From Orbicella franksi (Eukaryota): DNA of 62,435 nucleotides. Shown here piece by piece: positions 1 to 51,403 of this stretch; the stretch's first letter is position 1; every line of letters begins with the position of its first letter. The position numbers and the translations under genes are program-made. The DNA lies in the NCBI GenBank assembly GCA_964199315.1, contig OZ116698.1, forward strand, positions 6,262,001 to 6,324,435. Reading direction: 5' to 3'. The notes below the pieces were generated by a model, which worked only from the letters and a program-made list of their open reading frames with translations, did not search any database and had not been told where the DNA came from.

Positions 1-3000
1 TCGTCACAATTACGAATGTTGGAGCCAGTTAAAGTGTACGATACATCACAAGCGTACTCTACATGGCTGCCATGTGGCAAGAGTTCACCTATTATAAAAA
101 TGCCGTTTGTCGTGTAACCATTGTCTAGGTTACCATCGAAAGCACATCGAGCTGGAAAATACAAACATGTTACCCACTTTAGTTCTTTATAACGCTTGGA
201 CTCTCAAGAGGCGAAGTTAACAACCACAAAGAGAAATGCAAAACGCTAAACAAATCCAGCATCCCAGAAATTAATGCTTAGAAGCTGTGAATTAAACATT
301 AACAAACTGCAACTAACACTATTTACCACGTACAGCGTTACATTTTATACTCAGTGTATCTGCACTGTCGGCTAACAAATTTATCTTTGGCGAAAGGGGA
401 TACAAAGAGGATTTGATGAGTGAAATCAGATATAAAGAAAGGCAGAATGTCTCGTTCTCAGTGAACGGATTGCAAACAGACCGAAGATCAAGCAGTTTAA
501 ACCCGTAATGTGAAAATTTACACTCATTTGCGAGTAATGGTTGATATGAATAACCGTGTCACCTTTGCATTCAGGTATGACGCCACTCCACGCTCCACCT
601 CTACACCGAATTGTGTCATTCCCCACTAAGTCGTGATTTCTATTGCATTTAAAAGTAACTGTTTGCCCCTCCTGAAAATTGTCACTCAGGCGTTTTCCTC
701 TGGATGGTTCACCGGGATCTGGACACACTGCTGTGTTAAAAACGAGAAAATAAAAAAAAAAAAAGAAAAGAAAAGAAAAATGACAAATGAGATCTAGAGT
801 TAAAAGAAAAACACGCAAAATAAATAAAGGTTAAAATATCTGCCGCGATTGTCATTTCAATTAATGCCTTTATACTGGTTCTTAAAAGCTGTATTCCACG
901 CATGTTCCCCATCACCTTTCCTTTCAATAGATCACTAAGCAAACTGGTTTGAACTTCTTAGACTAGATCAAACATTGCTAGAGAAAATTTCTTAAAATCA
1001 AAAGAGAAGCGAACCAGCAAGTTCCGTTTTACTGTAACATGCAGTATCGCCCCCAAAATGTACGATCCGCGTGGTCAGCATAAGAAATAAGCTCTAGCCC
1101 TACCGGCGAGAGCTCGTTACTCACAGTGCTGAACAAAGGGTATGCAGACTTTGTGGATGCTAAGTATGTGGAAAACCATCTATTCAAACGTGAGACTGCC
1201 AAAATGTATGTCAAGAGTAAGGCTCTATGAGATCGAGATATTTCAGCCTGACTGAGGCTTCCCAAGATAAAGGTTGTGCCTCAATCGCGATTACGTTGAG
1301 CTGAGACTGTTCAAATGTATGTCACGTGTTAAACACAGATTTACGTACCAACACAATTAGGAACAGAATCACTCCAAGAGCCATCATTGCAGTGGATATC
1401 TCTACTACCATCTAGTTGATAATTTCGATCGCAAGTAAATACCACTAACGAGTCGTGTCTGAAGTCGTTTCCTTGCATACGTCCATTAGGTGGTGTTCCT
1501 GGGTTGATGCATGGTGCTAAAAGGCAAGATATTAATTTAATAAACGTCGGGTGCCCGGAATAAGGAATTCAGTACTACATTCGGAAGGAAAAACATGGCA
1601 AATTCCTCGAACAATGACATAAAAATCCACAAAATTTGGAGTCCAACGCTTCAATCTTTCAAAGCCACAAGTTGATATAATTCGTTCAGGCCCAAAACGT
1701 CCCCTGGCCGAAAAAGGGTCAACACCATTAAATAATAGAGGATTTACTTAGAGAGACGTGTTTGTGAGGGAAAAGTAAGTATTACATTTTAAATTTCATT
1801 ATAAAGTATTTGTATTTTTATTCACCTTTACATTCTGGGGGATCGAGGTCCCACCTTCCATTATTGCATGTCAGTCTGTCGTTGCCTTTGAGAGTATACT
1901 CTGCATCGCATTGATACCAAACTGTTTTGCCGTGCCTGTAATCAGCACCGATCTTTTTTCCGTGAACTAAACCGCCAGGAGGTCGGCAGAAAGCTAGAAA
2001 ATAAAAATAGACATGATTAGATTGGTCTATAGCGAGTATCCTCTGTGCGACGAGTTTGTAATTGGGTTACCGAGGTCATCAATCCAAATGCTTGAACTGT
2101 TGGACAAAGTCCCTTTCTATCAGCTATATATTGTTTGGTGCTGCCGACTCCAGAAATAAAAAAAAAAAAAAAAAAAGATGGACTCTTGCAAGTACTTCTC
2201 AAGCAGGCTAGGTTAGTAAGTAGTTTATAACATGGCACTTGTCGGCTTTCGGAAACAAAACATTCAACATACCAATCAGTCCAATCAGAACGCACGGATT
2301 TATTTTAAGTCTATCTTACCATATAATAATTTTATGTAAAATTGTATATTTTCATATTAAATTCTTTTATTAAATGACTCTTAAACGTTTTGCGCTAAGG
2401 AGTTTTAAATCCCCAAGTTACAAATTCAATCAAACTTTTGATTTTCGGTTCTGTTTCTCGCGTTTCAGTACATAGGACCCCACAGTTGGTGTCTGTGAGA
2501 GAAATGTCTCAAGTGGTATTGAGCGCAGCGGTAACGTTCTTGTCTCCTTTTCAGTATTATTCTGATCACTACAAGAAACCTCGTTCTTTCGTGGGCTCGG
2601 TTTTGACATTTATGTAATTTCCTCTGTTTGTGTGAAGTTTGCAGTTACCATAAATAACAACTCGGGAAAAGTAGCAATGCACTGTTTGTTTTCGAACCTA
2701 GTGGAAAAACGTTTACTGAATTAAATTTCTAAAATCTTTTGATAATTTTAGCTGTTCATTTGTTATATCTGTAATAGAAATTTAGATATGTATCCAGTTC
2801 AAGGTCAATATTGCTGATATTGATCGTGTTAACCGACCTTTACAAACTGGAGCATCACTGGTCCAGCGTCCATCGTCGCATTCCCGTGTCTTAGATCCAA
2901 CCATCGTGTAATCTTGTAGGCAGCCGTAAGTTATTTTTTCACCGTGCTTGATCATGGCATTTTTCTTACTTCTGCCTTCCACATATAAACCTCCTCTGGG

Positions 3001-29696: not shown

Positions 29697-29697
<1 letters not shown>

Positions 29698-29735
<38 letters not shown>
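29698..29735. repeat. (AAC)n microsatellite
   Basis: Seen directly. Confidence 0.9.
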
Positions 29736-29736
<1 letters not shown>

Positions 29737-30605: not shown

Positions 30606-30815
30606 GGGCCCGTTTCTCGAAAGCCCCGGAAACTTTTCGGGCCCGTAAAGCCATTCTTAGTTCTTCCGTATCTAAAAACGGAGAAGTGTATACCCCTGAA
30701 ACTTCTTGTAATGTTAAGAAAATGTGACTAAAACAGCTCTGTAATCGTAGGGTTCGAGATTTTACCGTGGCTTTCCGGGCCCGAAAAGTTTCCAGGGCTT
30801 TCGAGAAACGGGGCC
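30606..30815. mobile_element. PIF/Harbinger-type MITE
   Basis: About 45-bp imperfect TIRs (GGGCCCGTTTCTCGAAAGCCCCGGAAACTTTTCGGGCCCG...) with a 3-bp CTG target-site duplication. Confidence 0.75.
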
Positions 30816-31835
30816 CTGGACATACTAAAAAGTCCCTTTGCCTGCACTCCATTGAGAAATCTATTATTATGAGGCTGTCGTGACCACAATTATGTCTAGC
30901 CGGCCATGTTGCTAAACCGTTAATTAGGTGCTTAACAGAATTTCTAGCCAGCTTGTCATCATAAATACGAAGTTAAGGGATGAACCGTGACGGGTCAACA
31001 AAATAGTTGACTGCAACTATAATAAGAAAATCAAAAAAAGATTAATAGAACTATATCTTTAGGAAAAGAATGCAGGTAGTTTCAAGCAATTGTTGCTATT
31101 GTTGTTATTATTGTTTATCGTTTTATTTTGCTTTATGAGGTAGTATCGATGACGTATCTTTTTATTTTCTAGGAACGTGTAGCTTTAAAGGTATGATGTA
31201 AAAGGTTTAATTGGTTATTTATCCTATTTTTCAAAGCTGCTAAGGTTACATCCGAAGGGTAACATCTCACAACAATCTGTGAATTTTTTCTGAGCCACCT
31301 AGATGATCTATGATTAGTCGAGAGGAGGATCCCTAACGGTTTTATACGAAAAAAACGACCTCGCATCTCTAAACCCGTTTTGTTCGTTTTATTTTGATAC
31401 AAATGGTTCACAATTCTCCACTGTAGCTCTGCATTCGACCGGTTAGGTTCTCTGTGTTGGAAAGAAGTCACACGAGACTTCGCTACACTAATTTACTGTT
31501 AAAACTGTCATGGCGCTAGAAACCATTCAAAAACCAAGTACCTTCCTGGGCTACATTGTTCAGTGGCTGTTTATCAATCTTTGAGAGAGGGGGAAGGGAG
31601 AAGAATGTCTACACACCTTACCATGCCAACTGCATTATACAAGACAGATGTGCCAAGTTTTCTACATTTTAGACATAATTCTTGGTTGTAAGATTTTTAT
31701 CTTTAATGTTGTCACTATCGCGTTTTCGCTAACATGTCTATACATAGTGACAACAGACTTCACAAATCTCTACATTTTGCCATCGAGTCGTCCTGCCGTT
31801 AGCCTGGGCACAGTGGCATTAGTACAAAATACAAA

Positions 31836-34800
31836 TTATGAGCAAAAATCTGGTATTTTGACGATACGAATCTTGTTTAAATCACTCTTCCAAATTTCAT
31901 CGTTACTTTTTATGGTACAAACTGAATTTGATATTTGTTCTATTTTGCCCTCTCTAATTTGGCCTGGTGAAGTTGCATCCTCTCCAAGGACTAAGGTCCC
32001 TATAGCTAATTCATGGACGTTTGGTTTCTCATCTAGAATCACGTGTTCCATATTCATCATTATGCTCTTAGTTTTCCCGGGAAGAAAGACTTCCGGGTTG
32101 TACTCCACATCGATGTATTCTCCTACAAATCCACGCTGATATCTACCGTTTTCCTTGATAAGAACAGCAGAGCCTCGCATAATACAACCTAGAAAGAGTA
32201 AGAAATGCGATGAGCCTAGTGATCCTACCGTGTGTCAAGGCTTGACATATTAGAAACGAGGTTTAATAGTTTGTAAGGAAGGATTGATTGCTTAGGGGGA
32301 GGGGTTATGTATGTAACAGTGTGTACCCTCAAAGTATCTCAAATGTGAAAGCGAGTAGTCTTCCGATGTTGAAACTTCCACCACGTCCCCTAATTGCTTC
32401 CCCGCACTTCCATCAAAGTTGGTAAAGCGATCGTAGGATAAAGAAGGCCTTAGGGGCATATATACGAGGCTTTGTCTTTGTCAATAAATTATAGACTCTT
32501 ACCTTTGGGAATTCCACATCCATAGACTTCGGCTCTTAGACAAATCGATTCCTTTATATTTTTTAACACTTTGATTCGTACAGACTGAGCAATAAATGGA
32601 TGTATTGCTTTTATTTGTTCCTCTTCTTCACTATAAGGTGGCTGTCAGATAAAACCAAATACAAATATTAGAAGTGAAAATTCTGTTGAAATTTCTTTGC
32701 AGTGTCTTTAAAATGGATTGATTTTACAAAGATAACCAATTTGCAGCATTCGATTACAACTATCATTTGGCTCCATTTCTCTTCACTACTCCCTGCCTCT
32801 CCTTTTTCCTTCCTTCTTCTCTCTCTGTTGACGAATACGATACGCCAGGTCCTATATTGTAATAAAGTTGATGTGTTATATGCTATTCTCATTTATCGTG
32901 TTTATTTAACTATTACATAGAGCACGAGTCTGTGTTTAAGACTAATGACTAAGCCACGATGTTTAAACGTGTAAAAGTTCAAAAAGTCGGGAATGTTTAG
33001 TGCTGTTTTTCTATTTGTTCGCTTTTTTCTCGTGTATATTTATCTCGTTCTCATTTAAGAATTATATTGTTTCCGTTTTCTACAAATGATAAAGCAAGTT
33101 TCACCTTTTCATAATGGAAATCCAACCACGCTTTGAAAATTTGGCCTTTCAACACTATACTTTTGATCTTGTATTCGCTTTTGAGTTGAATTCTTGCTCC
33201 AGTAATCTTATATTTTTTGGGCAAGTTAATCTGAATAAAATCATCCTTTCCCCCCTCTGAGCACCAATAGTTGCCTCCACCAAGTCGGCCATTATGAGCT
33301 GGATGTTGAACTCTATGACTGGAAGCTTTGATGGATGCGTCTGGGACCTTTCTACTTTCCATTCCAAGAGGAAACCCTGTGCCACAATCTTAAATATTGA
33401 AATAACACTAATATGAGCCTCTAAAACTCCAGCACAAAGACATTAGAATGATAGCAGAATGATAACAGAATCAAAGCCAAATTAATCACACAGGGGCACG
33501 TAACCTAAGAGATCAATCAGAGGGCACATTATTGTACACAGGCGAGAAACGGATTAATTTGCAGGGATAGGCTAAAGAAAGAGTTTATATCGAATAATCC
33601 AATTGTAGAGCTCCGCAAGGACAAAGTCAGAGGAAACGTAAATATAAACGTACAAAAAGCAATGGACGGGAAAACGTAAAGATGGATGTGCAGATGGATC
33701 ACTGAATGCAAGTGCACGAAATCTGATAATTATCAATGGACTGGCTGACAAACGGTTTAAATGCGTTTAAAAGCGCAGATTCTTCTTTGAAATTAGACCA
33801 AAAATGTCCGTCTTGCAATGCTTGCTCTAACTTGGAATTCTAACTCAAATTCTAAATCAAAATTGTATGAAGTACGCTACTGAGCAGGGAGTAACGAAGC
33901 ACTGGGTCTGGACGCCTTTTATGACCAGGTACTTAAGTAAATAAATTCAAAAAAAAAAATCATATATTGGAGGGAAAAGAAAAGTATATTTAGTTATCAT
34001 TGGTTAATAAGTTACCTTGGCATGTTGGCAGTGCTTGATCCCACTGCCCATTGTTGCATTTTGCCTGAGAGGGACCTTGTAACAAGCGATCTCCCAAACA
34101 TTCAAACTCGACAACTGAGGTATGATTAAAAAGTCTTCCAATGGTTTGTCCATTTTCTGGATGACCGGGATCAGGGCAGGATGCTGTGAAACATGAAAAT
34201 GAATCAGAGTATGAAAAGATTATTACGTTTATATAAAAGAGCACCAGAATAAACATTCACAATTTGAAATAGGGTTGTCATGGTTATATGAACTTCCTTG
34301 AATAAAATCATGCCATCCCAAATAGCATACAGACAAATTTTCGACTAAATCGCAAAGTTTTTAAATCAAATATTGACAAAGTTGTAAATGGTTAAATTCA
34401 GGAAAGGACAGTCCACCCTTAGACTGATTTCCGGGATGAGAGGGGTTAAAACAAATTGCACAGTTGAAATTGTATTTATTACGAAAGGTTTACCTAAGCA
34501 CTTCGGTATTTCTCTATTCCAGTTCTTGCTTTTGAGACAAGTTAGTTTGCCGCTTCCCACCATGGTGTAGTTTTCACTGCACTTAAATCGCACGAATCCG
34601 CCGACAGTAAAGTTCTTTTTGACTTTCGATTGTCGTCCATGTGAAGGACTTCCTGGATCTTTACATGAAATAACTGAAAAGTAATTAATACAGTTTTATT
34701 AAAGTGGTGGTGCTCATACAACTAACCAATAGAAACCTTGCGATTACGCAATTCATGCATAGTCAATGAGCGTAAAACAAAAGATGTGCAGGGTCAAGGG

Positions 34801-37800
34801 CCTTCCAACATAAATCTTAACCTGTTTGTCTGCTTCTGTGATATTTACCGGCCTTCGTAACCATTTCCCTCTATTAACTATGGATAAACATGGTATCATT
34901 TTTAATAAAAACATAATTGCGGAATAGCCGAAGACATAAGGTGTTGTGAACCGGACCATGCTTGATTCTTCAGTTGAAGAATCTCCAAACATATTATACT
35001 TGATTGTAAGGAAAAGGCGAGTAAAAAATAGAAGCCTGGCTTAAAATGCAGCAAAATGCTTATGAGGGTGATAATCTAGGCTTTAAATAGCGAGGCGTAT
35101 TTTTATCGTATTTCGTCTTTTCATAGGATGTGCCTGTGAGAATTATAGCTAGATTGTAGTTGCACTCTGGCCTCAAATGCAAGCTAGGTTCATACATTGA
35201 CCTAGAAACAATATTTTGTTTCGATTTCGCTTTCTTTTAAAGTGCACAGCTTGTTAAATAGCTGTTTATTGCTACAGCACAATTAGCAGAACCATTTGCA
35301 TTCTAGATGTACATACCTTTACACAGGGGTTTTTTGCTTGTCCAGTCTCCATTGTTACAGCTGATGGTTGCTTCTCCTTCCAGTTCATAATCCTCGTTGC
35401 ATCTAAAGGTTACCGATTTAGCGTGTCTAAAGTCATCTCCGCTTCTGTTTCCATTGTCTGGCACTCCGGGATCAGGACATGGAGCTAAAATTGCATTATA
35501 TATTGAACATCAATACTTGGTCTTTTTAAGTGTTGTAAAAAACAAGCAATAAGTTAAAAGACGTCGGAGTGCAAGTTGTGCAGACCCCACCACCAAAACC
35601 GTTGTCTCTTTGAATTAAACTTGAGATTACCATATCTGTGCTAGCAAAGAGCTAAAGCTCAATCCAATCGCGTTTAATTGACCATATGCTAGGTATTGAA
35701 AATATAAATTCTATGGTTAAAAGTTTTCTAAAAATAAGCTTTCGGCTATCAGGCTACAGCTTCGACAAATAGTACGGAAGGTACGAATGTATTATGAGTG
35801 TTAAAAGTGTTAAAAGTGTTGATAAAAATGAGTCACTTACTCTGGTAACTTTTAACCAGATAGCCATTTTAGTTGTTTACATTACTTCTAACCCTGGTTA
35901 GTCATCCATTTGTACTTATATCCTAATGTCTTTAATTTTTGCGTGCCGGCAATGAAGCTTTACGGCGGATGATTCCTTCAACCCCATTAATGAACCCAAA
36001 GCAATCTAAGGTCCGTTTTGACTCACCCCAGCATTTTGGTGTTGGCGAACTCCAATCTTTCGTTTCTTCGCAAACGATCTCGCTTTTTCCTGACAGCGTG
36101 TAGTTATCTTTACAAGTAAATTTCACTGAACCACCATAGTTGTAACCATTTTTCACGTCAGCTTGTTGACCGTTTAGAGGAATACCTGGATCACCACAAC
36201 TTATGACTGTGAAGAGATAAGTTAGTAACATGGAGAGACTTGTACAAAAAGTCACTGACATGGCCTGTTGTCGTAGAAATGGCCACCTTCGATATTCATT
36301 CGCTTTCATCATAGGTACAATTTCGTGCACGTATTACGCTAGGTTGTAAATCACCGAAACTCGTAGCGTTATCATGACATTGGTACTGAGCACCAACGAG
36401 GGGCACCTTTACTCAGGTACAATAAAAGTTGACAATAAACGTTGATAGTTACTTGTGATAATACATTTGGTGGCTAGTCTAACATAGCGCTTTGATTCGC
36501 CCCGGCCAAGGTACTCTTCAGAGACATTTCTGCTTGGCAAACTCGCAATGCTCAACAAGTTTCCAAGCAGAAAGGTCCTTGGCTGGGACGAAACGAAAGG
36601 GCTGCATCAGACTAACCACGAACAATGTATTATCTCAATAAAAATTAACCTGTATGATGTCTTATGTTAAATGCAGATATTGATGAAAGAAAATAACACT
36701 TGTTAATATATAAATATATTTCCTACTTACTGTTACAAGATGTTGGAGATCCACTCCACAGCCCATTATTGCCACAAGTCCGGATCTCTGAGCCACTGAT
36801 CTCGTAACCTGTCTCCTTACACTTAAACCTGACGACGCCATCGACTTTCGTGTGGGTTTCGAGAATTTTTTCAGCCTTATCAGGGGTTGGTAGCACTCCA
36901 CAGTCAATTTCTTGGGGGGAAAAAGTAAGAGACAGAATTACACGTACAAATTTTATATTACAGAATTAGTTACTTGTAATTAGGAGTTACTCGTTTAACT
37001 AGCTTAAAATTACTATAATTTTGTGTAAAAATCTCTTTTAAGATACAACAAAAAACAAAATAAAATTGATTTTCTTGTAACTTTCAAAATAACAACATCA
37101 GCAGCAGCAGCGACAACAAAACACAGTAGAAATATTGTTTTTTGCAACTATAGGCAAAATGAAATAAATTCAAAACACACACGCAAAAAAATGAGGTTAG
37201 AATAGCCACGCTGACGACTCTATCACTTTGACCTTGAACGCTGTAAAGTAACATCGTCAATGTATTTACGTTCACAGGTTGGCGACCTCCCAGTCCATCT
37301 CTGGTTCGCTTGGCATTGCCGGTATTTGTCTCCGACCAGTTTGTAGCCATGATTACAATCAAAATCGACTCTGCTTTTGAAGGTAAAGATGTAAGACTTC
37401 AGCTTGCCGTTTTCAGGGATCCCAGGGTTTCCACAACTTTTTGCTGAGAAAGAAAATATATCAGTGTTCATCGTTCTTATTTTAGAGATATCTCTGAGGA
37501 CACCTTTATTCCCTGGCACGAGGTATGTGGAAGAACATTTTGCGCAGAAAACGAATCCCTGCGGCGAGACTTTATTTAACAATCGATATAAACCGCCTTA
37601 AACAATATTGAAGACATGTCTAACACACAAGTAATAAGTCTAGCTGGATTTGCAAGTTTGAATTTCATTAACTTCGCTCCCTTGTAACACAACGTTCTAC
37701 TACTACATTCAAATCACGACAAAGAAATTTGCGCTTTATAAATTGCAGGGTTCTAGGCAACTGCTTGCGATTGGTTCTTTACTCAAGCGCAACGTGTCAA

Positions 37801-40800
37801 TCCAGTGGCAGCCATTCAAACAGGGACACTACATGCATCTCAAACAGGTCGTGCTACGTCTCCAGAGCTTGAATTGTCAGAATCCCTCGGTTTGAAGGAG
37901 TTCTACATGAGATAAGTTTGTTTTGTTTCATATCACTGAAACCCTGTTCTAAACCACCTGACAAAGAGCTATAACTAAACACGTTTGACAAAATTAGTTT
38001 TAGACATACGTGAGCAAGTAAAAGAAGGGCCGGTCCATCCTTCCAAGCTACAACTCAGCAGTCCTATCCCTGTGGAGAAGTACCCACTCTTGCACCTGAG
38101 GAATACTTTTTCCGAGTACTTGTATGAAGATTGCTTAGATCCTCTTAGCTCAGAATTTTTCGGAAGTTCCGGAGGGCTACAAGATGGTACTGATTGAAAA
38201 GATCAAAAATTGAACGTTGTTTAAGCACCATTCTAGGAAAAGTCAGCAAATTTGGAGCTGACTGTTAAAAGATTTTAAAGTTAAAAAGGGTCAAAGATAT
38301 CCCCAGTTTAGTAAAGATCCCGAAAGATCAGACTCGTGGCGCAATTTATTCCATTCCCTGTCAAGGTTGTGACAAAAGCTACATCGGGGAAACGAAACGA
38401 AAATTTTCCACCCGGCTCAGGGAACATCAAAAAGCGGTTGTAAACAAACACTCGCACAAGTCAGCTTTAGCGGAACATTGTTCACACTCTGGCCACATAC
38501 ACCATCTCCTAGGAATCTTCAAAGATTTCACGTACAAGCACAAATTGGCGCAACAGACGTATTTCAGAAGCATGGGAAATGAACACTTGTAGGAATCCGC
38601 TGAACCGCGGTGATGGCATGCATTTGCCGCACGAATTCTTAAATTTAGCCCTGAGGGACAGGACATAATTAGCTCCGATTTGCTGATTTGCATAGTATAA
38701 GAACGTGCCTTTTTACAAATTCCTTGTCACTTTCCCCTAATGAAGGCTGAAGTTTTAGCCGAAAAGTTGGGACTTTTACAAAAGTTTTACTAACATTTTT
38801 ACATTTTTTTAAACCAATCATGGACCCCAAATTAAATTCATCCATGAAAGTAGGTTTTGTTACCCGATTTTTTTAACTGTCGAAGTAAACACACTTTTAT
38901 ATGGGTTTTGTAGTCATGATGGTTTTTAGTTACAAACTGAAGATGTGTGTTACCATCTTGGGTAACTCGCTTCCAAATCTGACAGCCAAATGCTTAGAAT
39001 TATGCGTTCAAAGCTGAACACGCACAATCACAATAGCTGCTAAGCTCTTTAAAGTACTCACATACGCATTTTGGCTTGGCTCGATTCCATTCTCCCGAAT
39101 TAGTGCAAGTAAGATATCTTGAGCCCTCCATCTTGTAACCTGGGAAACAGTTGTATTCCGCTCTATCTCCTACTGCTACATAATCCTCATCGAGATTTCG
39201 ACGGAATATCTGCTTATTTCCATTGCTAACACCTCCTGGGTCCTGGCAGATGATTTCTATTAAAGAAAAATAACATACTTGGTTGTTAAACTGCCAGAAA
39301 AGCACAATTCGAACGATTCTGCAATGAAGGAACTGCGACTTAAAATTGGCTTTGGGTTTCTTCCTAGCTGAGTTTCGTCGATCGCAGCTGTCTTAGCCTT
39401 GCAACGTTTACCTCTTCATACCAGGCGAAGGCGAAATTTTTTTTCAATTACATATATAATATAAATCATGACCAGTGTAAGATAAAGTTAGAGCCAAAAG
39501 ATTGATACTTACTGCAGGATGGTTCTGTTCCGTCCCACCTCCTTATTCCACGACAAGTCCGTTTCTTGGACCCAAGCAATGAGTAAGGTTTGTCGCATTG
39601 GTAACTGACAGTGGACGCAAACGTGGTGGAGGAATATTGTCGTCTGCCATTGTCTATTTCTGTTGGTTTTCCACAGTCTATGGCTATAAATTCAATAAAA
39701 ATATAACTAAGTTTTGTTTGGAATGAACTAGGCACTTTTAAAAGCTAATTATAAGAATGTGTTTGTAGGGAAGTGGTTAGAAAACCAGACTGGTATTGGG
39801 TTATGAGTTCGACCTCCGTCGGGAATTCAGATTTTTTCTTCTACCCATCACCAAACTTAAAATTCACCATCGTTCATTATTTATCTGCGCGCAGGACGTT
39901 GTGCAAGCTGCTGATCCCAGCACTTTACAGGATGCTTGTCACATTTGAACCCAGTGGATTTATGTAGGTCGTAGTAGCTCCGTAGTTAGAGCGTCCGATC
40001 AGCATCCGGGACGTCATAGGTAGGAATTATGACGGGAACTTTGTCTCTCTCCGGATCCCGTGCTCGCGAAAGGCTGAAAATTCCCCCTACACGCGCAACG
40101 CACGAATTCAGAAATACAAACCTTTCGGAAGACAGCTGTAACCACAGTCCCCATCACAAACGCATTCCTTATCTTTACTACAACTGCCTGAATCTGGATT
40201 ACATGACTTTCTGCAGTACCGGAAAGCTTGTTTATTAGTTCTCTTGCATGTGCAGCTTGGCTTTACTTTGTCCCAAACTCCGGTTCTTGTGCATGTTAAG
40301 GTGTTGCTCCCTTCCATTGTGAAACCTGGGAAGCAACTGTATTTTACCTTTTTTCCAGATTCGAAGCCATCGTGAGATTTTTTTCCGTGTTGGATGTTGC
40401 CTGGGTCTGTACAGATCAGCTCTAAAAGACAAAAAAAAAATTACTCATTTTTTGGCAGCGGAAATTTTTACCTTTGTTTGATGTTTGAAAGAACCATTGA
40501 AAGAACGAAGGAATGAAATGAAAGTTTAAAATGTGAATGTAATTACTACTTTGAAAAAAATTATACTAAACTGTAATAAATTTCGCACACTATATACTTA
40601 CTGCAGGTTGGCTTTTCCCCATCCCATTGACCGTTTCCTCTGCAAGTTCTCTTCTTGGAGCCAAAAGCTATATATGGAGAGGTGCACCGATATCTTGCAA
40701 CCGAGCCAAGCGTGTCGTTTTTGTAACGGACCCGCCCGTTGTCTATAGTTAGTCTTGGGCAATGTAGATCTGGAATAGTCGAAAACGACGTCCTTTTTTT

Positions 40801-43098
40801 CAATATCTCAATATACAATCGGTTTTAGTTATTACTGTAAAAATACTAGTAAAAGAGTGCTTTTGGCCAGAAAACCAATACAGAACACGGGTCTGACGAT
40901 AGCATCCTGCTACACAGTCCATATGCTCTACCACAGCCATCAACCACACCTATAAAATCTACAACTGGTTGCAAGGTTAGATTTTTACTATTTTGTATGC
41001 CTTCACATAAACATGTTTAAACAACGCAAGTTGTATCAGGGGAAAGTAAATGAATTAACATTCATTGGTGAAGAGGAACGGACAATAGACGAAGGCCTAT
41101 TTCACGTAACCCAATCATTAATTTAAGTCCAAGTGTTTGGGATACATAACTGACTTTATGTAGCTAAGGTATATTTTAATATGTAAATAGTGTCCCCAAA
41201 TAGTCATTTTAAGCTATATACCGTTGACACTGAAATGAAGTCGTTCATTCATTCATTCATTCATTCATTCATTCATTCATTCATTCATTCATTCATTCAT
41301 TCATTCAATTAAAGACACCTAATATAACCGTTTCGATAACGAAGACTTGTAAAACTGGAAGTTGAAACCAAAGGAAAGCAAGACGCTGTCTATAATTATT
41401 TTTACTATTCGTCTGAATGCGTAGGACTTTGGATAATAGAAATACATGAATGATCACTTCTTCACTTGCACATGTTCACTTGGACTTTGAAAATATTTGT
41501 AAAATCGCGAATAAATGCCAAAACATTGCATATCTATCTGGAAATTGAACACCTTTATGCCTAAAAGCCTAAAGGTCAAGGTTAGAAATCGAGCCCAAAA
41601 GTAAAGGCAGATATTCCAAGGGCGTTATGGTATACCTCACCCAATAAGCTATTGTGAACTTGCCTTATTATCATTGTATGAATTTCAGGTCAGTCTCGGC
41701 AACCAGGTGGGATTTGTTAAATAAGTTTTTCAGGTCCAGTTGCAATATTTTTTCTCGATTTATAGTGTACCAAATTAGCACGGGAGTACTGAAAAGCATG
41801 ACACGAAAAACAGTTTAGTTACATCTCTCTCCACTTTTTTTTCTTTTTTTTTTTAGCAAATGTCATTACACGTTCCCGCAGTCTAAAAACGGTATAACAC
41901 TACAGCTTGTACAATAGTAGTACTTCATTTATACCAGAAGGCAAAGGTGGCAATGTAGAAATCACGTAGATATGTTGAAAACAAAGCGCAAGAATGATAA
42001 TTCCAAATGAACCTGTTTTCATTGGTCTTGCAACGTATCTGGACATAAAGAACCCCCGCTGGGACTCCCATGTAAAAAGGAGGGGTGCAGGTCGGAAATT
42101 TTGAAAGGAAGCCCTAAGAGGCACCAAAATCCTGTTTTGTAAGCGTGGCATTAAGTCTTTTTCAACCCCCCGGGTTCAACTCTAAGAGGCACTAATTCAA
42201 AAGAACACATTATCCCCCATTATACGTTTTTCTTTTCGTCTCAATACTCTAAAAGGTACCCCAAAAGCTCCATCTTTTGAGGATGAAGACCCTAAGAGGT
42301 TCCAAAACCGAGTTCGTATACAGTATTTATTTTATATGGGAGTCCACCTCCCCCAGGGATGAGACCATATGGCGTGACACCAGTGTGAACGACACAGATC
42401 AAATTTTTAGTAGAAGAGCCAGAAGCCGAGAGGTTTATCGCGATAAGGTAAAAAAAAGGAAAAACAAAAAAAAGAAGCTGTGAAAACCATGGTGAGAGGA
42501 TTTTGAGCGATTAGGTCAAAAGGCCAGAGTCATCAGAGTTTCAATCTTAGCAGACACGCTGAAAGGAAATGACGCCATAGATGGCGCTAACGCAGCTGAA
42601 GCGAATATTTCTTCGTCCATAGACGCTGTTGAGCAGAATTGCGTTCATCCTTTCCATTTGGTGAATTCTAGAACAAGGCAGTCAGTATTTTGACTGGTGT
42701 TTTGTAGACAGGTAACCATAACGGCATAACAAAAAGAGATGACTGTGCTAAATCTCAAATTGTGTAAAATCTGTTGCACACGTAGGAAGGAATTTCTTAC
42801 CTCGTTTGACGCAACTGTAGCCGCAATCCCCATCACACACACAGTCTCTGTTACCTTTGCAGTCATCCTGAGCGGGATCACAGGGTTTCGAGCAAACTTT
42901 GGGCTGGCGATTTGTACGAGTGCAGTTCTGACATCGAATGCCTAACAACAAATGTCAATGCAGCAAGTTACATTACGAGAGCTCATGATTGCAGCATAGT
43001 AATTTAAGCGTCCCATTATGTTAAACTTAAGATCATGAATTCGTAACCCAGTTACCTTGAACAGCGAAAAAGGCAAGAATAACCACTGCGTATTTCAT
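31836..43098 (-). CDS. Gene B: secreted WAP-CCP2-WAP-CCP9-F5/8C(discoidin)-tandem Tudor/SH3-like protein, about 1007 aa, 16 exons
   Basis: Exons 43056-43098 (signal MKYAVVILAFFAVQ, aaaacaATG context), 42801-42941 (WAP-like), 40602-40769, 40122-40421 (CCP+WAP), 39513-39683, 39062-39256, 38010-38189, 37270-37443, 36731-36910, 36027-36206, 35317-35484, 34494-34673, 34016-34183 (CCPs), 33105-33388 and 32503-32641 (CGTGFPLGMES...CLRAEVYGC = F5/8C), 31836-32188 (terminal). Lengths sum to 3024 nt in frame. Confidence 0.9.
38225..38790 (+). mobile_element. Decayed Penelope-like element 3' fragment (GIY-YIG endonuclease) in a gene B intron
   Basis: Translates GAIYSIPCQGCDKSYIGETKRKFSTRLREHQKAV...SALAEHC, then a frameshift/stop, then EAWEMN...LNRGDGMHLP; followed by a taatgaaggctgaag...ccgaaa tail. 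Confidence 0.85.
39770..40085 (+). mobile_element. Degenerate tRNA-derived SINE
   Basis: A-box-like gtagctccgtagttagagcgtcc and a B-box-like gagttcgacctccgtcggg unit. Confidence 0.5.
41244..41306. repeat. (TTCA)n microsatellite
   Basis: Seen directly. Confidence 0.95.
42050..42355. repeat. Dispersed repeat related to 13598-14120
   Basis: Shared subsequences in opposite orientation. Confidence 0.5.
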
Positions 43099-44155
43099 TG
43101 TTTTAAAAACGCAACTCGTTACGACTGTGTGAAACTCACACAGGAAGTTTTATACCCGAGACGTCGTGGGTGCTACTGGCAAAGCATCAAGTTTCCCCCT
43201 GGCAATACGTCATATGATTGATGGCGTTCTTGTTGTTGTGAGACGGCGCTGAATCATTACTGTACTTGAGACGATGATCATCGTCTCTTGTTACTGTGCT
43301 ATTTTGATGTATTAATTTTTTCTTCTGCATGCTTTTCATCTAAAAACGTGGGAGCTTTCGGTTTTACTTTGTCGGCTTAGCACTGAGTGAGAGAGAAAAT
43401 GTTTGCAACAGTGATAGCATAGAGCCTATTATTGGTCTTTAGCCACGTAGAGGATCCTGAGCAATCCAACCTTTCTAAGCTAAAGCTATTCACCAGTACC
43501 CAGTGAGTAAGCTCTCTAACAAGTCACGGGTGGAGGGTACAAAGCTGTCTTTTTCCTCTCTCCCTATCTCTGTCAGACCATTTCACTACAGCTGGATGAA
43601 GGGAACAAAAGGGAGGGTGGGTCGCCGAGCGTTTGTGCATCAAACGTGAGAATGTGCTTCAGCGTTCAAAAAAAAAAAAGGGAAAAAAATTGGACAAATG
43701 AGAAAAGTCGGACGGGAACGTGATGATCTTCACGCAGATCCAGTTGAACCCGATAAATTCTACACCTATTTTGACTATCAGGTATCGTCTAAGTCAAGTT
43801 GTTTGTCCACGGGATATGATAACAAAAGCTTCCACATTCAATAAAGATCACTCAATGAACGCACAATAACACTTGATTATATATAGGTAATCATGTTATG
43901 TTGAAGCAATCCAATGATTTCGAATTTCATTTAAAATGTCTTTTTCAATTCCTTTAAATTATATCTTTTACTTTCTAACCGCTAAAGAACACCACAGCCC
44001 TGAGGATTTAACTAAAAATGAATTCTAATTAACTCCGACTACTCGCGATCATCTGGCTTGCCAAGGCTAGCCTCCATACTTCCGCTTAAGCTGAAAGGAA
44101 AGTTTCCCAATCTGGGCGTCAATAATTTTACTTCGACTGAAATGTGATTCGGAAC

Positions 44156-47100
44156 ATGGCGGCCATTAGCACGATACACATTGTTGTTCTTTCCTGTCTC
44201 CTTCTGTCGTCTGTAAGAGGTAAGAAGTACCAACTAAATTAATGGGAAAATTCTACTGTCATTCCGCGGTTGATAAATGAGTCATAACGACCTGAGGGCA
44301 GAAATATCAAGATATAACATTCCTTTGACTACTTGCTGAAGCAGACGCCACTCCTTGGAAACTGAAAAACCCTAAATAATAAGTGGAAGACAAAACAGTT
44401 TGTAAGTGATTGTAAGCCACAGAAACAGTTGATCGTACAGAGACCTACAGGACACTAGAATGAACACGAACTTGGTTGTTGCCATCAAACGAAGGTCAAT
44501 GCATGCGTCTCTCTGTGAAATATATAATTTGCAAGACTAATTTAGAGCAAAGTGAAAGGAAAAATAACGTTGGAAACAAGGCATTGGCTAAACGGAACTC
44601 AATCAGTGCCAGGCATAATATAATTTTCGACCTTTTTAAATTCTTATTGGCCTCGAATTTCGTAGCACAGCAGTGTGGTTTGTGGCAGTTTTCCCGTGAG
44701 TCGATCGCGTTGTTTATATAAGCCCCGGTGAGGGTGAGGGCTGGGGAAAGAAGGAAGTACACTGTGTCAAGAGATGGTGATCTAGATCACAGTCTCTTGA
44801 CTCTGTATGTTACACTGACAGGATACTACACAGACCACTGAGAGTTAAAATCGTGCTTTGGTAGTATACTAAGAGACTTATTTTCAGCCAAAATTTGCTA
44901 AATAACCGGTAAACTACCGCTTTATAAGTCCCCCCCCCCCCCACCCCCTTCCCCTGGTCATTGGCCCAGCTGCCTGTAAACCGAAACAAACCCGCTCTCT
45001 AGCTTTCCTTGTTTTGAATGCTATAATGTTTTACAGCTTAATTAACAGTATATGTGAAAACATTTTTGGTCAACATGTGCAGCTATAGCTTGTTTCGAAA
45101 CGGTTTTTTATTCCGGTTATAAGCCCATCGAAAAGCCCTTACGAAGTTGGATAAGCCCAATGCTTATAAGCGGTAGTCTAAGTTAGTTTAATTGTGTAGC
45201 TAAGGTTTAATTTTGCGTATGTGTAGGGTAGGGTATGTTTCGTACATTCCAATAAATTGAGCCACGATAGACATAAACTAATTTGCCACAGTGTGTGCTA
45301 CAGTATTTAACTCTAGTTCGGACACACCTATCCACTTACAATACAAAAATACACTGTACACTGTTATTTCTCAAGGGTAAAAATACTTACTCTGCGTCCC
45401 CAGAAATGAATTGTGGTGCCTTCGAAATGTTTTCTCTATTAGTTTTCGCCGAACATGGCTATCACGGTCATATTTAAATCCTACCTCCGGGTGCAAATTA
45501 TGCGATTGGAATAGTCCGCCATATTGGAATAGCCGACAATTTACGAAAATAGTCCAGTTTCGAGTCCACCATGATCGCTGAATAAAAGCACTGGGAACGT
45601 ATTTGCACAGGGTTAGCCTCGACCTAAAAAATATTCACAAATACCGGTGGGAACAGTGCCACAAATTTGAAAATTAAACAATACACAGAGCTGTAAACAG
45701 GTCATCTTCTCGCTGGAATTTGTGAATATTTAACTTTAGATCGAAGCTAATCCTGTACAAATGCGTTCTCAGTGCTTTTAATTAGCGGTCATGGCGAACT
45801 CGAAACTGGACTATTGCTTGACTCGGAAACTCGCTCCCAGGACTTCTCCGTTGCCCTTCTGGGCCGTGCCTACCCCTCATTACTCCCGTTCTAAACAGAA
45901 AATTACCTGAAACTCTTACACAATAACTGGCGCCAAGTAAATGTAGAAACACAGCAGGAAATAGAACATTACTTTTAGCCCTTCCAGAGACAATAAAAGC
46001 AAAATTAATGTAATTAGTAAAACAAGAGGTAAAGAAACAATGTAAAATTTATTGACGCTTTTAGGGTAATATGGCTAAAGTCATTTTTCTTACATAGTTA
46101 TACTGATTCGTGGTCCCATATCACGCCTTGCAGGGGATGTTTGCGGAGACCCGCCAAAAATTAACAACGGTAAAGTACAGACTGAGTCGAAAACGGGCAA
46201 CGTCACGGCTTTTTACACCTGTGACAAAGGGTTTGTCAAAGTTGGTGAAGAAAAAATTGCTTGTCTTTCATCTGGTAAATGGAAGAAAGCCACGATCAAA
46301 TGTGGTAGGTAGCAACACAGCTTGTGGCGTATTTCAAGTGGTAAACAATACTTTTTTTTTTCCACAACGTTGTCCAAATACTTCATTGAGGTGAACAGCG
46401 GCTTTTGTTCCTTTTTGTGAGCCAATAGTGTTTTCGTGGTTCCTTATGTATTAGCCTTACCTTATAGGGAACTCGCCGCCTGCCTATTTGTCACAGGGAT
46501 GGAGAGATACATCGTTTGGACATATTGACATATGTTCTATTGCTTCGTAAGGATTTTTTTCTATTATCATTTCACTTAGTTGCAGTCTGTCCTTTACCAC
46601 CCATTCCACCACATGCGTTCATTAAAAGGCCAAGATCACAATATCTCGAGGGAGACTGGGTATTCTACGCCTGTAGACCAGGATATCGACCTCTGGATGG
46701 ATTGGTCTTTAATCGGTGCTTACGAGGAACGTGGAAGAAAGTGACATTCAAGTGTGTTGGTAAGCGTGTGCACTAAATATGTCCACTTGAGAGTACCCAG
46801 AATTTTATCTCCCTGGCAGTAGTGCACCATCTAGGCAACCCAGCAGCGGTTTAAGTTAGCAAGTAATCCTATATAATTCTCATTCTTAAATCTTAAACCT
46901 ATAGTAAACAAGCAAACTCAAGCCCCTCTCCGTGTTTTGACAGGGATGGGGGTTGATTGAGATGCCTTCGGGTTTTCGTTGACATTAAAACTGTCCACGT
47001 AATGAGCTGCTTTTGTTGATCATGAAGAGACGTCCGCTATCTTGGATCCGCCATCTTGAATTCGACAATTTTTGATTTCACCATTTTTTCACAAGTCAGA

Positions 47101-48587
47101 AAATAAGTAAACGAAATTGGTGGGAAATTGATCCAAAATGATAACAGAATTTAAATAGGTACTTATTTTGCAATGCTACTCAAGCGGATAATCCTCGTTC
47201 TAAAGTTCTGATAAAAAACCTTTAGAGGGTTGAACTGGCATCCATCTCCACCCCTTTTGTACACCGCAAGGTTAATCGAAACATGCTACACTGTTATCTT
47301 CTTCCATAACATTTAATACTCCCTCCTTAACTTCATTCGTTTCCTTTCTTTCTTGTCTAAATATTCCAAGGATATCGCAGTTTTCTAAAAAGAATTAACC
47401 ATAACTTTTAAGGAGACTTGATTCCCCTGCACCTAACAGCTCGATTGTAAGGACCGGCGTTTAAATGTTTTGAGTCACTCGAACTAGCTGATATCTCTTT
47501 CTAGTGTCCAAGGAATGCAAAAGGCCAGAGGATCCCAAAAATGGTGAAAAATTCGGTAGTGATTTCTCTGTTGGCAAAAGAGTGAGGTATACCTGTGATA
47601 CTGGCTTTGTTCTTCAAGGAGCTTCAGAAATCAAATGTTTGAATAATCGAACGTGGAGTGGCGGAGCGCCATCTTGCAAAGGTAAACACAAGATCCACGG
47701 CTCTGCACAGACGTGCACACACACACACACACTTTACTTCTCCAATTCATTAATAATTCACCACATTTCCAAACACCTCGAGGTTAGCCAAAAATATTTT
47801 CCTACGTGTCGTATTTTCAAATCTATTCTCGGTTTTTGGAAATGTGGTAAAACATGGTCTTTCTTGTTTGATATATTACATATAGGGAGCTTTCAGCAGC
47901 ATGTTTGCAAATAAATGCCAAAACTCCTTCGAGGATTTTTTCTGCTCTACTCCTTTATTTCGAATGCTAATGGAAAGATCGTGATGGTTGGTCAATTTCT
48001 CCCCGCCCCGATTCTCCCGTCGATTTGCTAGAGATGAAGGCTTAGGGATCACGCTTTGTTTCAAAGAAGCGATGAATGATAGCTAAGTTTAAATGATGTC
48101 ATTATTCTCTACGCAAGTGGTAGTTATTCCCTTTGTTAGTTGTTGACTGTGGAAGCCTACCAGATCCTGTCCATGGAAGGAAAATCAAGGAAACGAAAAC
48201 TACGTTTGGAGGCAGAGCTGATTTCATTTGTAAGAAGAGAGGGTATTCTTTGATCGGGAAGAAGAGCCGATTATGTCAAGCTAGCGGTGCATGGAGCGGC
48301 AAGCCAGTGGTTTGTAAAGGTGTATAATTAAAGCTAATTAACACGTTTTTTTGGTAAGGACATAGTTAGTTCCCTCTGGTAACTATGGTTAGGGTGGTTG
48401 TGATTATGTTCAATACAAATTATGTTAAGAACGAGTAGTGCACGAAGAATCTCTGATAATTTCCGGTGTTAGTTAGTTTGTTTAGTCAACTGTTTGTTGA
48501 TAATTTTCCGCCGATTTTTCTTTCTTTCTTTCTTTTTTTTTATCTTGATTGCAGGGACTGTTGATGTTGTTCGTTTCATCGTTATTG

Positions 48588-48634
<47 letters not shown>

Positions 48635-51403
48635 GATGAAAGATTCGCACAGCTATTGATGATATTGAAGCTGGTTTCGTCATTGGCTCCGGGCAACAAC
48701 AAGTTGCCTAAGGAAGCCAAGAAACACCCCTTGTTTGCTTTTTCTCTTCTTTCTACATCTCCAGCACCTTTCTAAGAATTCTTGCCGACCCCAACAATGC
48801 ACATCTCTGGATCAGTCCAACAGGAATGCCNNNNNNNNNNNNNNNNNNNNNNNNNNNNNNNNNNNNNNNNNNNNNNNNNNNNNNNNNNNNNNNNNNNNNN
48901 NNNNNNNNNNNNNNNNNNNNNNNNNNNNNNNNNNNNNNNNNNNNNNNNNNNNNNNNNNNTTGTCCCTCAAGCAAAACAGGCGGAGAATGTAAGTTGTGGC
49001 CAAAAGTTTATTTTACAAAACAAAGCCTAGTTCAAACAAAATTCTTCAAACGCCAGTTTAGCGTCATCCATCATTCATATCATTTTTGTACATGGCTACT
49101 TCTCTTAGTAGCTGTATATAGATATTCTTAGTCACTAAATATTCCTTTCTGCTGATTCCATGTGTAGCCCCTTGTGGTGATCCTGGGAAACCAGTTGGTG
49201 GACGACGAATTGGAAAGAGCTTCAGGCATGGAAAAAAAGTGAGATTCAGCTGTATGGAATCTCTGAAGATTCAAGGACCAAAAAGAATTATTTGTTTTGA
49301 TGGAGTTTGGAGTGACAAGAAACCTATGTGCCTGCCCCCTTCGCAAGTAAAAGGTAAACGAACGTTTCCAATTTGAATGTATGAAAGATCGAAAATATAT
49401 ATCCCACAAGCGCATTAAATTCTTGTTTCTTACTTGGCCCTCTCCTTTCTTGAAACTTAGGTCTGCATCCAGGCCAAATAGTCCATCAGGCCAGCGCTCA
49501 TTTGACTTGTCTCTTTGATCTTAACATGAGTAAGAAGTACTGAAGAAACCCTTATTTTTAGATTATTCAGAGTGCGGTATGCGGAGTAAAATTCGCCTTT
49601 CTCGAATGGTTGGTGGTGTTCCAAGTACTCATGGAATGTGGCCCTGGCAAGCTGGACTGTATAGACTTGATCAAAAGACCGGTGAGATTAATTAAATGTG
49701 TTTCTCATAATCAAATAGAAATGAAGGCATTTTAAAGTACTCGAACTTTAAATATATAATCCCAACCTCCTCTCTCTTGGATCGTAAGGATTACACAAAA
49801 CATCTGAACGCATACAAGTGTATAAAAGTGTTCGCTTTCTTTCGCTGATTCTAACTCCGTTCTCAGCCAATTAATGCAACGTAGTTCAGTTATCAAAACC
49901 CTTTTAGAATCGATGCAAAAAAATGGTCTAGAAGCGAACTTGCCATGAGAGATTACCTTCTTATTTAATATTTACTGTGAAAATGTAGAAACCTCTGCCT
50001 CTCCCATAAATCACCGACGGAGCGAGACTAGCAAGAAACAAAAAACAAAATTTTCCCGGATTATTTTTCCCATCCTCGATCTGCATGGCAGGCTAGTAGA
50101 CTGCTCGGAGGACATTGCCCTTCAGGGATGGTTTGTTGGTCTGTTATTGTTGTTATTCTTTTTCATGTGTCACGTCCAGGCGAAAAACAGTTTCTTTGTG
50201 GTGCAGCGCTGATTGAGCGACAGTGGATTATCACTGCAGCACACTGCTTTATGTACAGACACACAGAAGATCAAGTCAGACGCCCTCTTACATCTCCACC
50301 AGAAATGTAAGTCAGGTTGTTCGCTTAATAGAAAGGTTAACCACCTTCCAACTTCAGCAGAGCTATACTACTTAGCCACCTGTAGCAGTGACTAATATTG
50401 ACCAATGAAGCCACAGAAAACTTCTATGGTGGAGTTGAGTTTGAAATATCTAGAACCACTATGCATGTACGTGCGTACTTTTGTGCAGCACCGTAATTGT
50501 AATTTTGAGTCCCTATTTGAGGGATGTTTTTATTTACTTATGTTTTTCTTACTCCAATTGACGATTTCAATAGAGAAGTGTTAAAATAACGTGCAGTGAA
50601 AGGAGAGGGGAAAGGGCAAAATGTAGTGAACTAATTACAGTGTATATGCCCTTTAATTAGATACGTTCATATTAGGATAAAAATAAAATTAGTATAAGAG
50701 AGGAAAGAGTAAACAAGAAGTAAATAAATAGTCTATGTAAATGGGTTATTTATTCTTATATTTTAGTGTTCTTTGTTATGCTGTCTTCTTCAGGTATAAG
50801 ATCATGGTTGGCGACAGTATGCGCGACATAGAAGAGGACTCAGAGCGTACATTCTTCGCGACTAAAATAATAATGCACCCTGGATACCATGACCACTTCA
50901 AAGAGAATGACATTGCTTTGGTCAAGTTATCCACCAAAGCGACACTTACACGGAATGTAAGGAAAGTTTGTCTCCCAGAGTCGGCCAACAGCTCGACACG
51001 TTGCGATAGCGTAACCCCTGGAAGTCAAGGGTTTGTTGGAGGCTGGGGAGCGACACAAGTGTTAAGCCCAGGAGAGACCGTAAACTCTGAAAACTCGTCA
51101 TCTACGGTGTTAAAGTACGCTAAGTTCAAAATTCAGGACGCAGAGCTGTGCCGCAACTCTACTGACTACCACTTTAACGAGTCTCTAAATTTCTGCGCGG
51201 GAGGCGATAAACATGGCGTCGGTCCATGTACGGGCGACAGTGGAGGTCCATTCGTCATGAATATGTTCCAGGGCGGCGCATGGAAATGGGTTGCTGTAGG
51301 CCTCGTTAGCTGGGGGGAGGGGTGTGGCATCCAAGGTCGATATACATTTTACACTAAGCTAGCAACTTATGTAGACTGGATTAACAAGCACACCAGGAGA
51401 TGA
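44156..51403 (+). CDS. Gene C: secreted 5x CCP + trypsin-fold serine protease (MASP/C1r-s/factor B/factor C-like, no vWA or CUB exon seen), about 604 aa
   Basis: Exons 44156-44219 (signal MAAISTIHIVVLSCLLLSSVR), 46134-46304 (alternative acceptor 46098), 46580-46759, 47505-47681, 48140-48319, 49168-49353 (CCPs), 49562-49681 (ECG..LSR|MVGG..WPWQ), 50180-50306 (LCGAALI..WIITAAHC), 50794-51403 (ENDIAL, GDSGGP, stop). Lengths sum to 1815 nt in frame. Confidence 0.92.
44913..45177. mobile_element. MITE-like element
   Basis: Termini ACTACCGCTTTATAAG ... CTTATAAGCGGTAGT with internal TATAAGCCC subrepeats. Confidence 0.55.
45548..45815. mobile_element. Foldback/MITE with about 100-bp imperfect inverted arms
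   Basis: AATAGTCCAGTTTCGAG...AATATTCACAAAT arm mirrored by ATTTGTGAATATT...CTCGAAACTGGACTATT. Confidence 0.7.
48591..48830 (-). mobile_element. 3' end of an R4/Dong-like non-LTR retrotransposon ending in (TAA)n
   Basis: Minus-strand GIPVGLIQRCALLGSARILRKVLEM* (stop at 48753), about 120-nt 3' UTR, then about 14 TAA units; the upstream part is in the N gap. Confidence 0.6.
48831..48959. other. Assembly gap (N run)
   Basis: Run of N. Confidence 0.99.

Follow-up and report, generated by a model that had tools for sequence, protein, structure and literature searches.

The window analysed here is a stretch of 62,435 nucleotides from the stony coral Orbicella franksi (497-Mb assembly GCA_964199315.1, contig OZ116698.1, positions 6262001-6324435). 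It is intron-rich animal DNA of 39.6% G+C with two runs of N, both of which lie in introns. In a six-frame scan of the window, about 30 exons for complement control protein domains (CCP, sushi) were found in four blocks, together with trypsin motifs at two sites, and single exons were matched by Pfam to Sushi, EGF_CA/EGF_3, Trypsin, WAP and F5_F8_type_C. A sequence-only reading of the window had claimed four neighbouring genes built from CCP exons, here called A to D, and splice models and Pfam domains confirmed that all four exist (Table 1). C encodes a serine protease, A a dead protease homologue, and B and D WAP-CCP-discoidin proteins. We favour, with moderate confidence, the interpretation that these genes belong to a duplicated and partly conserved neighbourhood in which factor-B-family proteases are interleaved with WAP-CCP-discoidin genes, with retained gene pairs and a probable co-regulation of D and C.

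Gene C was modelled as nine coding GT-AG exons that encode 604 amino acids. The guide was P0168, its orthologue in Oculina patagonica, with exon identities of 64-79%. The product is laid out as a signal peptide, five CCPs, a linker with the interchain Cys, an RLSR/MVGG site and a trypsin domain. The catalytic triad is intact (TAAHC, NDIAL and GDSGGP), so the earlier description of C as a five-CCP serine protease with a complete triad was correct. The joint between exons 1 and 2 (44219/46134) was backed by RNA reads and contigs. Segments matching Oculina residues 198-258 and 259-319 flank the assembly gap in this gene without loss, and the orthologue is contiguous across it. Orthologues of C were recovered from Montipora, Acropora, Oculina and further assemblies; they are 558-611 amino acids long, carry only Sushi and Trypsin domains in Pfam, and in some cases bear the automatic source names 'proclotting enzyme-like' or 'MASP1-like'. 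A vWA query had no match in the window at E<=1e-5, and the 208 bases between the CCP5 exon and the activation exon of C leave no room for such a domain. A CUB domain was found neither in the C model nor in the precomputed Pfam matches of the orthologues. From these sequence features, C is most likely a secreted zymogen that is cut after the RxxR site.

Protease residues are numbered here as in thrombin. In the S1 pocket of C, Asp189 is replaced by Gly and Gly226 by Thr, and Gly189 and Thr226 are likewise found in all C orthologues. Both are confined to the C clade, apart from P0025, which has Gly189; most cnidarian Bf-like (factor B-like) rows have Asp189 and Gly226.

After the C orthologues, the next-best full-length relatives were cnidarian proteins named 'complement factor B-like' or 'C2-like', which have a Sushi-VWA-Trypsin architecture and share 39-44% identity with C in the protease half. 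Maximum-likelihood analysis of the protease domain placed the C clade (100/100) within a clade of cnidarian CCP-vWA-proteases, with a support of 96/93 in one tree and 98/96 in a second. The architecture of the clade members was read from Pfam, and the factor B/C2 naming was taken from the source records. Camel C1s, FVII, a factor C-like row and the Bf-like rows from echinoderms and Limulus were placed outside the clade holding C. We therefore regard the descent of the C protease domain from the cnidarian factor B/C2-like lineage as established at the level of sequence. The cnidarian Bf/C2-like proteins also share with C the five N-terminal CCPs (as in Bf-2b), an IVGG/MVGG-type protease N-terminus and a location on the same contig within 0.2 Mb, but differ from it in the presence of vWA and in Asp189/Gly226. 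The vWA domain docks Bf on C3b, and the acidic residue of the Arg-specific S1 pocket is Asp189 in cnidarian Bf and Asp226 in vertebrate Bf. Since C is nested in the Bf clade, lacks vWA and has a changed S1 pocket, it is a factor B descendant minus the C3b-docking domain and the basic-P1 pocket. Without vWA and without an acidic S1 residue, C is judged unlikely to be a C3 convertase. The complement interpretation of the sequence-only reading is supported as far as the family of the protease is concerned.

The possibility that C or A is a MASP or factor C was rejected, since neither CUB nor LCCL is present and the C1s and factor C-like rows fall outside the clade. MASP, C1r, C1s and Limulus factor C likewise have CCPs directly before a chymotrypsin-fold protease and a Tyr225-type loop, as C does; however, they carry CUB, LCCL or lectin domains, of which C has none, and A consists of CCP and EGF only ahead of its protease domain. 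The claim that these architectures match neither Bf/C2 nor MASP is thus borne out, by the missing vWA in C and the missing CUB in C and A. In Aiptasia, Bf-1 has an EGF and two CCPs, and Bf-2a/2b have 4-5 CCPs (PMC4840205), so the N-terminal module types of A and C pre-exist in true Bf genes. Earlier factor B trees were restricted to vWA + trypsin sequences (PMC4840205), and vWA-less relatives were therefore omitted from them. Literature searches turned up no account of the cluster, nor of Bf paralogues that lack vWA.

Some other members of the cnidarian Bf clade deviated from the usual form. P0170 (Exaiptasia) and P0029 are CCP-proteases without vWA that are located in a sea-anemone Bf subclade, apart from the C clade; they reflect either repeated vWA loss or faulty gene models, and P0170 also bears a protease fragment at its N-terminus. 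Two Bf-like representatives, P0061 and P0058, read GDGGGP (Ser195 to Gly), a sequence that suggests more catalytically dead members inside this clade.

The product of gene A had been described as a CCP-EGF-pseudo-protease, and this was verified by Pfam (Sushi, EGF_CA/EGF_3 and Trypsin) and by the replacement of all three catalytic residues (Table 1). The six modelled exons encode 399 amino acids. Cys42 and Cys58 are both gone; Asp189, Asp194 and the interchain Cys are retained. For the first coding exon, candidates with an ATG, a hydrophobic core and a phase-1 GT donor were sought upstream of the CCP exon, and neither RNA nor conservation backing was found for the top-scoring one (26148-26055). 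Contigs from 11 RNA-labelled runs contain the last exon of A. Relatives of this exon range in identity from 60-97%, one of them being a Nematostella entry named 'predicted protein, partial' (66%). Over this exon, the identity among the orthologues of the four species is 63-97%, and that to Nematostella 63-66%. GD(V/I)GSP occurs in every gene A orthologue of the last-exon alignment, and the Nematostella row has HNIALL too. The orthologue loci in Nematostella and two assemblies from ENA have the RxRR/IVGG site and Asn at position 102, with Asn or Ser at position 57 in two of the three. These loci also show the CCP-EGF-protease homologue order, the CCP exon having been identified for Nematostella and for one ENA assembly of the two. 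The triad loss and the furin-type activation site are thus common to all four species examined (position 57 being Ser in one). In the tree, A formed a clade of its own (100/100) on a long stem.

By this pattern of conserved sequence, A qualifies as a pseudo-protease of the chymotrypsin fold under purifying selection. Since the furin-type site, Asp194 and Asp189 are kept, an active-like fold after cleavage and a role as a binding protein would be expected; A should be an older catalytically dead relative that acts as a cleaved binding protein. With its CCP-containing pro-region, dead triad, kept activation site and Asp194, A resembles haptoglobin (CCP + dead protease), arthropod clip-domain serine protease homologues such as PPAF-II, and HGF/MSP. 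In contrast to those homologues, A has the CCP-EGF_CA-protease homologue order, has lost all three triad residues and the Cys42-Cys58 disulfide, and is here found in hexacorals only. Cnidarian Bf-1 resembles A in having CCP and EGF at the N-terminus, whereas the cnidarian Bf/C2-like proteins have the vWA and the catalytic triad that A lacks.

Genes B and D had been described as WAP-like genes with long CCP arrays. This description was borne out, with corrections: among others, both genes end in a discoidin (F5/8 type C) domain, and B overruns the window. B has 14 CCP exons inside the window, and at least five further CCP exons and an F5/8C exon lie to the left of it; altogether the gene has no fewer than 18 CCPs. 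The CCP exon at 8466-8640 is complete beside the assembly gap, with an AG acceptor about 17 bases off, and the CCPs flanking the gap are encoded by adjacent exons in Nematostella. A tandem repeat, APSRLRAF-like in one frame, extends from 9006 to about 9150 directly to the right of this gap. In D, the CCP exons number 11 and the WAP-like modules two. The B module and its Nematostella counterpart (22.9 bits) exceed the Pfam WAP cut-off; the D modules gave no match or E 0.58. All six WAP-like modules align with 15 invariant columns, and their C5-C6 spacing is CxC instead of CC. The top three Protein Data Bank matches of the WAP-like profile were nawaprin and two elafin chains, at a marginal E of 0.06-0.1. 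No transmembrane segment was seen in B or D, and both products are probably secreted.

The tail of D, 114 amino acids long, matched more than 50 database fragments at 56-92% identity and no Pfam family. Its predicted model (predicted local distance difference test, pLDDT, 85.8) would consist of two small beta barrels resembling a tandem Tudor/Agenet arrangement, with a template modelling score of up to 0.68. Such a double barrel is an odd fold for a secreted protein. A Cys-rich open reading frame (ORF) at 38430-38726 was rejected as a D exon since it is not conserved in Oculina. For the ORF at 32295-32480, between the discoidin and tail exons, neither a clear paralogue nor Pfam support was found.

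The order of these genes was then compared with that in other cnidarians. In Nematostella, a WAP-CCP gene colinear with B lies 7 kb downstream of the A orthologue on the same strand. In Oculina, a gene for a 1065-amino-acid Sushi + F5_F8_type_C protein, the D orthologue, is located head-to-head with the C orthologue at a distance of about 0.9 kb. The next gene after this pair is the same multi-pass membrane protein gene as in the window, so the conserved synteny extends to D-C plus that gene; its Oculina counterpart has a weak DUF5009 match in the product, and Pfam gave nothing useful for the exons of this right-hand neighbour in the window. In two ENA contigs, a D-like gene upstream of A was not reached, since the A introns are much longer there.

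In the window, D and C are divergently oriented across about 1 kb of DNA that may be a bidirectional promoter. RNA contigs stop at adaptor sequence at 43139 and 44139, suggesting that the two transcripts begin there, at a distance of 1 kb. In library X24, raw poly(A) reads covered the D exons at about 7-15x and the C exons at about 2-5x, with zero depth at 43258-43848, and contained splice joints of both genes. Contigs of libraries X15 and X16, which had been retrieved via gene C itself, contained both D and C in spliced form. D and C are probably co-regulated. A complex predicted from the Oculina C protease domain and the Oculina D WAP module 1 scored 0.00, with a pLDDT of 32 for the partner, a result that speaks neither for nor against binding.

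The neighbourhood of the window was examined by searches of the genome, and positions in Mb refer to the contig. When an Acropora factor B was used as query, the nine best protease-domain matches lay on this contig at 5.896-6.539 Mb, bar one. Nine of the ten best matches fell within 0.65 Mb around the window, C ranking 10th and A 39th. According to the match tables, vWA exons stand beside protease matches at 6.075-6.077, 6.091, 6.106, 6.121 and 5.894 Mb, and genes with both vWA and protease are thus placed at 6.074-6.121 and 5.894-5.896 Mb on the same contig. The first of these groups (6074448-6121019, 143-188 kb left of the window, seen in match tables only) has six factor-B-like protease-domain exons in which two types, 54% and 46% identical to Acropora Bf, alternate; they are arranged in three repeats with about 15-kb spacing at 6.079-6.120 Mb. 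Either a two-gene unit was triplicated in tandem here, or the assembly contains a duplication. In the left flank, at window coordinates of about -59000 to -43800 (+ strand), there is an inverted partial copy of the 3' part of B, which is 96-97% identical in DNA to window positions 1-2223, lies about 50 kb to the left and has its own CCP and F5/8C exons. More CCP-array exons are present on the - strand from -13700 to -38200. Across the 497-Mb genome, the WAP-like module profile matched just five places, which all fall in a stretch of 0.4 Mb of this contig: one in B, two in D and two at 6.666-6.668 Mb. The D tail exon has a second copy (6549728-6550072, + strand), and a distance of 11 kb separates it from the Bf-like protease exon at 6.539 Mb. 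We consider it established that the neighbourhood is non-random and partly conserved.

The neighbourhood could be a mere by-product of tandem or segmental duplication of CCP-exon genes, and the adjacency would then be devoid of functional meaning. The thrice-repeated protease array, the inverted copy of B and the additional CCP-array genes are in line with this explanation. However, the A-B adjacency has been kept from stony coral to Nematostella and the D-C head-to-head arrangement in Oculina, and the second Tudor-tail exon again lies close to a Bf-like protease exon. Moreover, B/D and A/C belong to different families and are interleaved all the same, so duplication alone fails to explain the arrangement. 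We regard a pure by-product as doubtful, though it deserves real weight.

The WAP-CCP proteins LEV-9 (WAP + 8 CCP) and Hasp (WAP + up to 17 CCP) are secreted scaffolds of the synaptic cleft that undergo proteolytic processing, and the WAP domain of LEV-9 is dispensable for receptor clustering (PMC9083331). B and D share with both proteins a signal peptide, an N-terminal WAP-type module and a long CCP array, in that order. They may thus be scaffolds of this type at cholinergic junctions or in the matrix, which the neighbouring proteases process or to which they are unrelated, and no immune role would be involved. LEV-9 requires C-terminal cleavage. The nearest Atlas cluster of the WAP-CCP genes was a nematode Sushi + WAP family (score 0.86, a lead only), and just three WAP-CCP genes of this kind exist in the genome. 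On the other hand, the discoidin end of B and D and the second WAP-like module and Tudor-like tail of D have not been reported for LEV-9 or Hasp, and the modules of B and D have CxC rather than CC. This explanation appears somewhat unlikely.

The sequence-only reading had seen here a complement-like immune module, in which C is the effector, A serves as its cofactor without catalysis, and the WAP-bearing B and D are regulators or inhibitors, acting on or with coral C3. In support of this, C belongs to the factor B family with true Bf genes close by, the pairs are conserved, D and C are divergently transcribed, and CCP arrays and dead protease homologues serve such roles in vertebrate and arthropod cascades. 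Like B and D, the complement-activation regulators (RCA; factor H, CR1 and DAF) have one CCP per exon and form clustered paralogues near complement protease genes. However, the RCA proteins, which are CCP-only arrays that bind C3b/C4b and have decay or cofactor activity, contain neither WAP nor discoidin. The order of modules in B and D is, on this comparison, a better match to LEV-9/Hasp than to complement regulators, and the protease/cofactor/inhibitor relationship therefore stays conjectural. Since C also lacks vWA and the acidic S1 residue, and the D modules are below the Pfam WAP cut-off, we consider such an immune module unlikely.

We therefore return to the interpretation of a duplicated, partly conserved neighbourhood with retained pairs. 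The window would be one stretch of a neighbourhood of about 0.8 Mb that was built by duplication, in which the C lineage arose from a cnidarian CCP-vWA-protease ancestor, lost vWA and altered its S1 pocket. The C zymogen would be cleaved after RxxR and bind to a target through its five CCPs, and active C would cut after a non-basic residue and not act as a C3 convertase. A would be cleaved at its furin-type site, adopt an active-like fold and serve as a binding protein. B and D would be secreted WAP-CCP scaffolds of the LEV-9/Hasp type, which could attach to membranes or glycans through their discoidin ends, and D and C would be driven from the shared divergent promoter region of about 1 kb. 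The gene structures, the descent of C, the clustering, the conserved pairs and the splicing of D and C are observed; that the proteins are secreted and cut by furin, what they cleave, and whether the genes are linked physically or functionally are the parts that we infer.

Several points weigh against this interpretation. All four genes together were not seen in another species among the Nematostella, Oculina and ENA loci compared, where the clustering that had been proposed as a check was seen for the A-B and D-C pairs. Only two libraries were chosen independently of these genes; X24 contained both D and C, and neither was found in X22. With just two independent libraries, the co-expression of D and C has barely been tested. 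The protease tree contained no MASP and a single C1s, and its one vertebrate Bf was removed as a long branch; A joined the cnidarian Bf clade at just 61/72. Among solved structures, the best sequence match of both A and C was thrombin. We take this match to reflect how far vertebrate Bf/C2 protease domains have diverged, rather than a role in clotting, and the classification did not rely on it. For A and B, the signal peptides are in silico predictions, and the likeness of B and D to LEV-9/Hasp is one of architecture.

A bolder version can be formulated, in which an ancient two-gene cassette, composed of a factor-B-family protease (or its dead homologue) and a LEV-9/Hasp-type scaffold, predates the split of stony corals and sea anemones, the protease processing its neighbour or being docked by it. 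If this were true, the origin of complement-type proteases would be tied to extracellular CCP scaffolds that were later used at synapses; at present we hold it to be improbable.

Existing descriptions of complement in cnidarians comprise C3, factor B and MASP. To this picture the locus adds a stony-coral-wide factor B descendant without the C3b-docking domain and with a changed specificity pocket, and a dead relative with an intact activation site that is common to stony corals and Nematostella. Both proteases are in fixed adjacency to LEV-9/Hasp-like WAP-CCP genes. They are concrete candidates for studying how complement-type proteases diversified before bilaterians, and whether an original partnership linked CCP proteases with CCP scaffolds. 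Should the pairs be functional, they would form a tractable two-gene system in which the promoter is shared, the proteins are secreted and the biochemical predictions are clear. Should they not be, the locus still illustrates cleanly how an innate-immune gene family can lose a domain and keep a pseudo-enzyme.

Table 1. Features of the window (positions are those of the window, counted from its first letter).
Feature	Position	Strand	Evidence or remark
Gene B (partial)	1..10694, about 5.5 kb more beyond left end	-	CCP pattern scan, Pfam WAP, Nematostella colinearity
B candidate signal-peptide exon	10694-10619	-	Sole frame-consistent GT-AG join to WAP exon, in silico
B WAP exon	From 10523; module 10518-10387	-	Pfam WAP, 23.8 bits vs cut-off 20.8
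B CCP exons	9368-9613, 8466-8640, 7691-7927, 7077-7286, 6445-6810, 5967-6215, 5327-5581	-	CCP scan
B CCP exons, continued	4223-4414, 3819-4133, 2785-3066, 1821-2066, 1344-1568, 429-830	-	CCP scan
Assembly gap	8658..9005		In B intron
Gene A	17343..21975	-	Pfam Sushi, EGF_CA/EGF_3, Trypsin (3 exons); splice model; orthologues
A candidate first coding exon, signal peptide MTLPSHFLVFFFGLLALRAAEV...	26055..26148	-	Top-scoring in silico candidate
A exon	21975-21793	-	Sushi, E 4e-12
A exon	20996-20823	-	EGF_CA/EGF_3, contains DINEC (calcium-binding EGF)
A exon	20385-20245	-	RIRR/IVGG site
A exon	19076-18951	-	TVANV (His57 to Asn)
A exon	18658-18504	-	HNIALL (Asp102 to Asn)
A exon	17762-17343	-	GDVGSP (Ser195 to Val)
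Gene D	31839..43139	-	RNA joints, Pfam Sushi + F5_F8_type_C, exon-by-exon Oculina conservation
D exon 1, signal peptide MKYAVVILAFFAVQ	43139-43055	-	RNA-supported
D WAP-like module 1	In exon 42940-42801	-	RNA joints 42940/43055 and 40769/42801
D CCP exon	40769-40602	-	RNA joint to WAP exon
D CCP + WAP-like module 2	40440-40111	-	Oculina comparison
D nine further CCP exons	Between 39744 and 33993	-	Oculina comparison
D F5/8 type C	33389-33054, 32644-32492	-	Pfam
D putative tandem-Tudor-like tail	32180-31839	-	Conservation and structure prediction
D-C intergenic region	43140..44138, about 1 kb		Divergent 5' ends; putative bidirectional promoter
Gene C	44139..51403 (coding 44156-51403)	+	Splice model, Pfam, RNA joint, orthologues
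C exons 1-5	44156-44219, 46134-46304, 46580-46759, 47505-47681, 48140-48319	+	GT-AG model
C exons 6-9	49168-49353, 49562-49681, 50180-50306, 50794-51403	+	GT-AG model
Assembly gap	48831-48959		In C intron, between CCP4 and CCP5 exons
Multi-exon hydrophobic gene, probably multi-pass membrane protein	53262-59400	-	66-89% conserved with Oculina gene

Two repeats were also recorded. A long trinucleotide run, poly-Ile on translation, occupies 22103-22252 between A and D. On another contig (C5:9713027-9776807, - strand), more than 60 near-identical vWA-like ORFs of 202 amino acids, with 29% identity to the Bf vWA, follow each other in tandem at exact intervals of about 998 bases; the array is strikingly regular and unrelated to the four genes.

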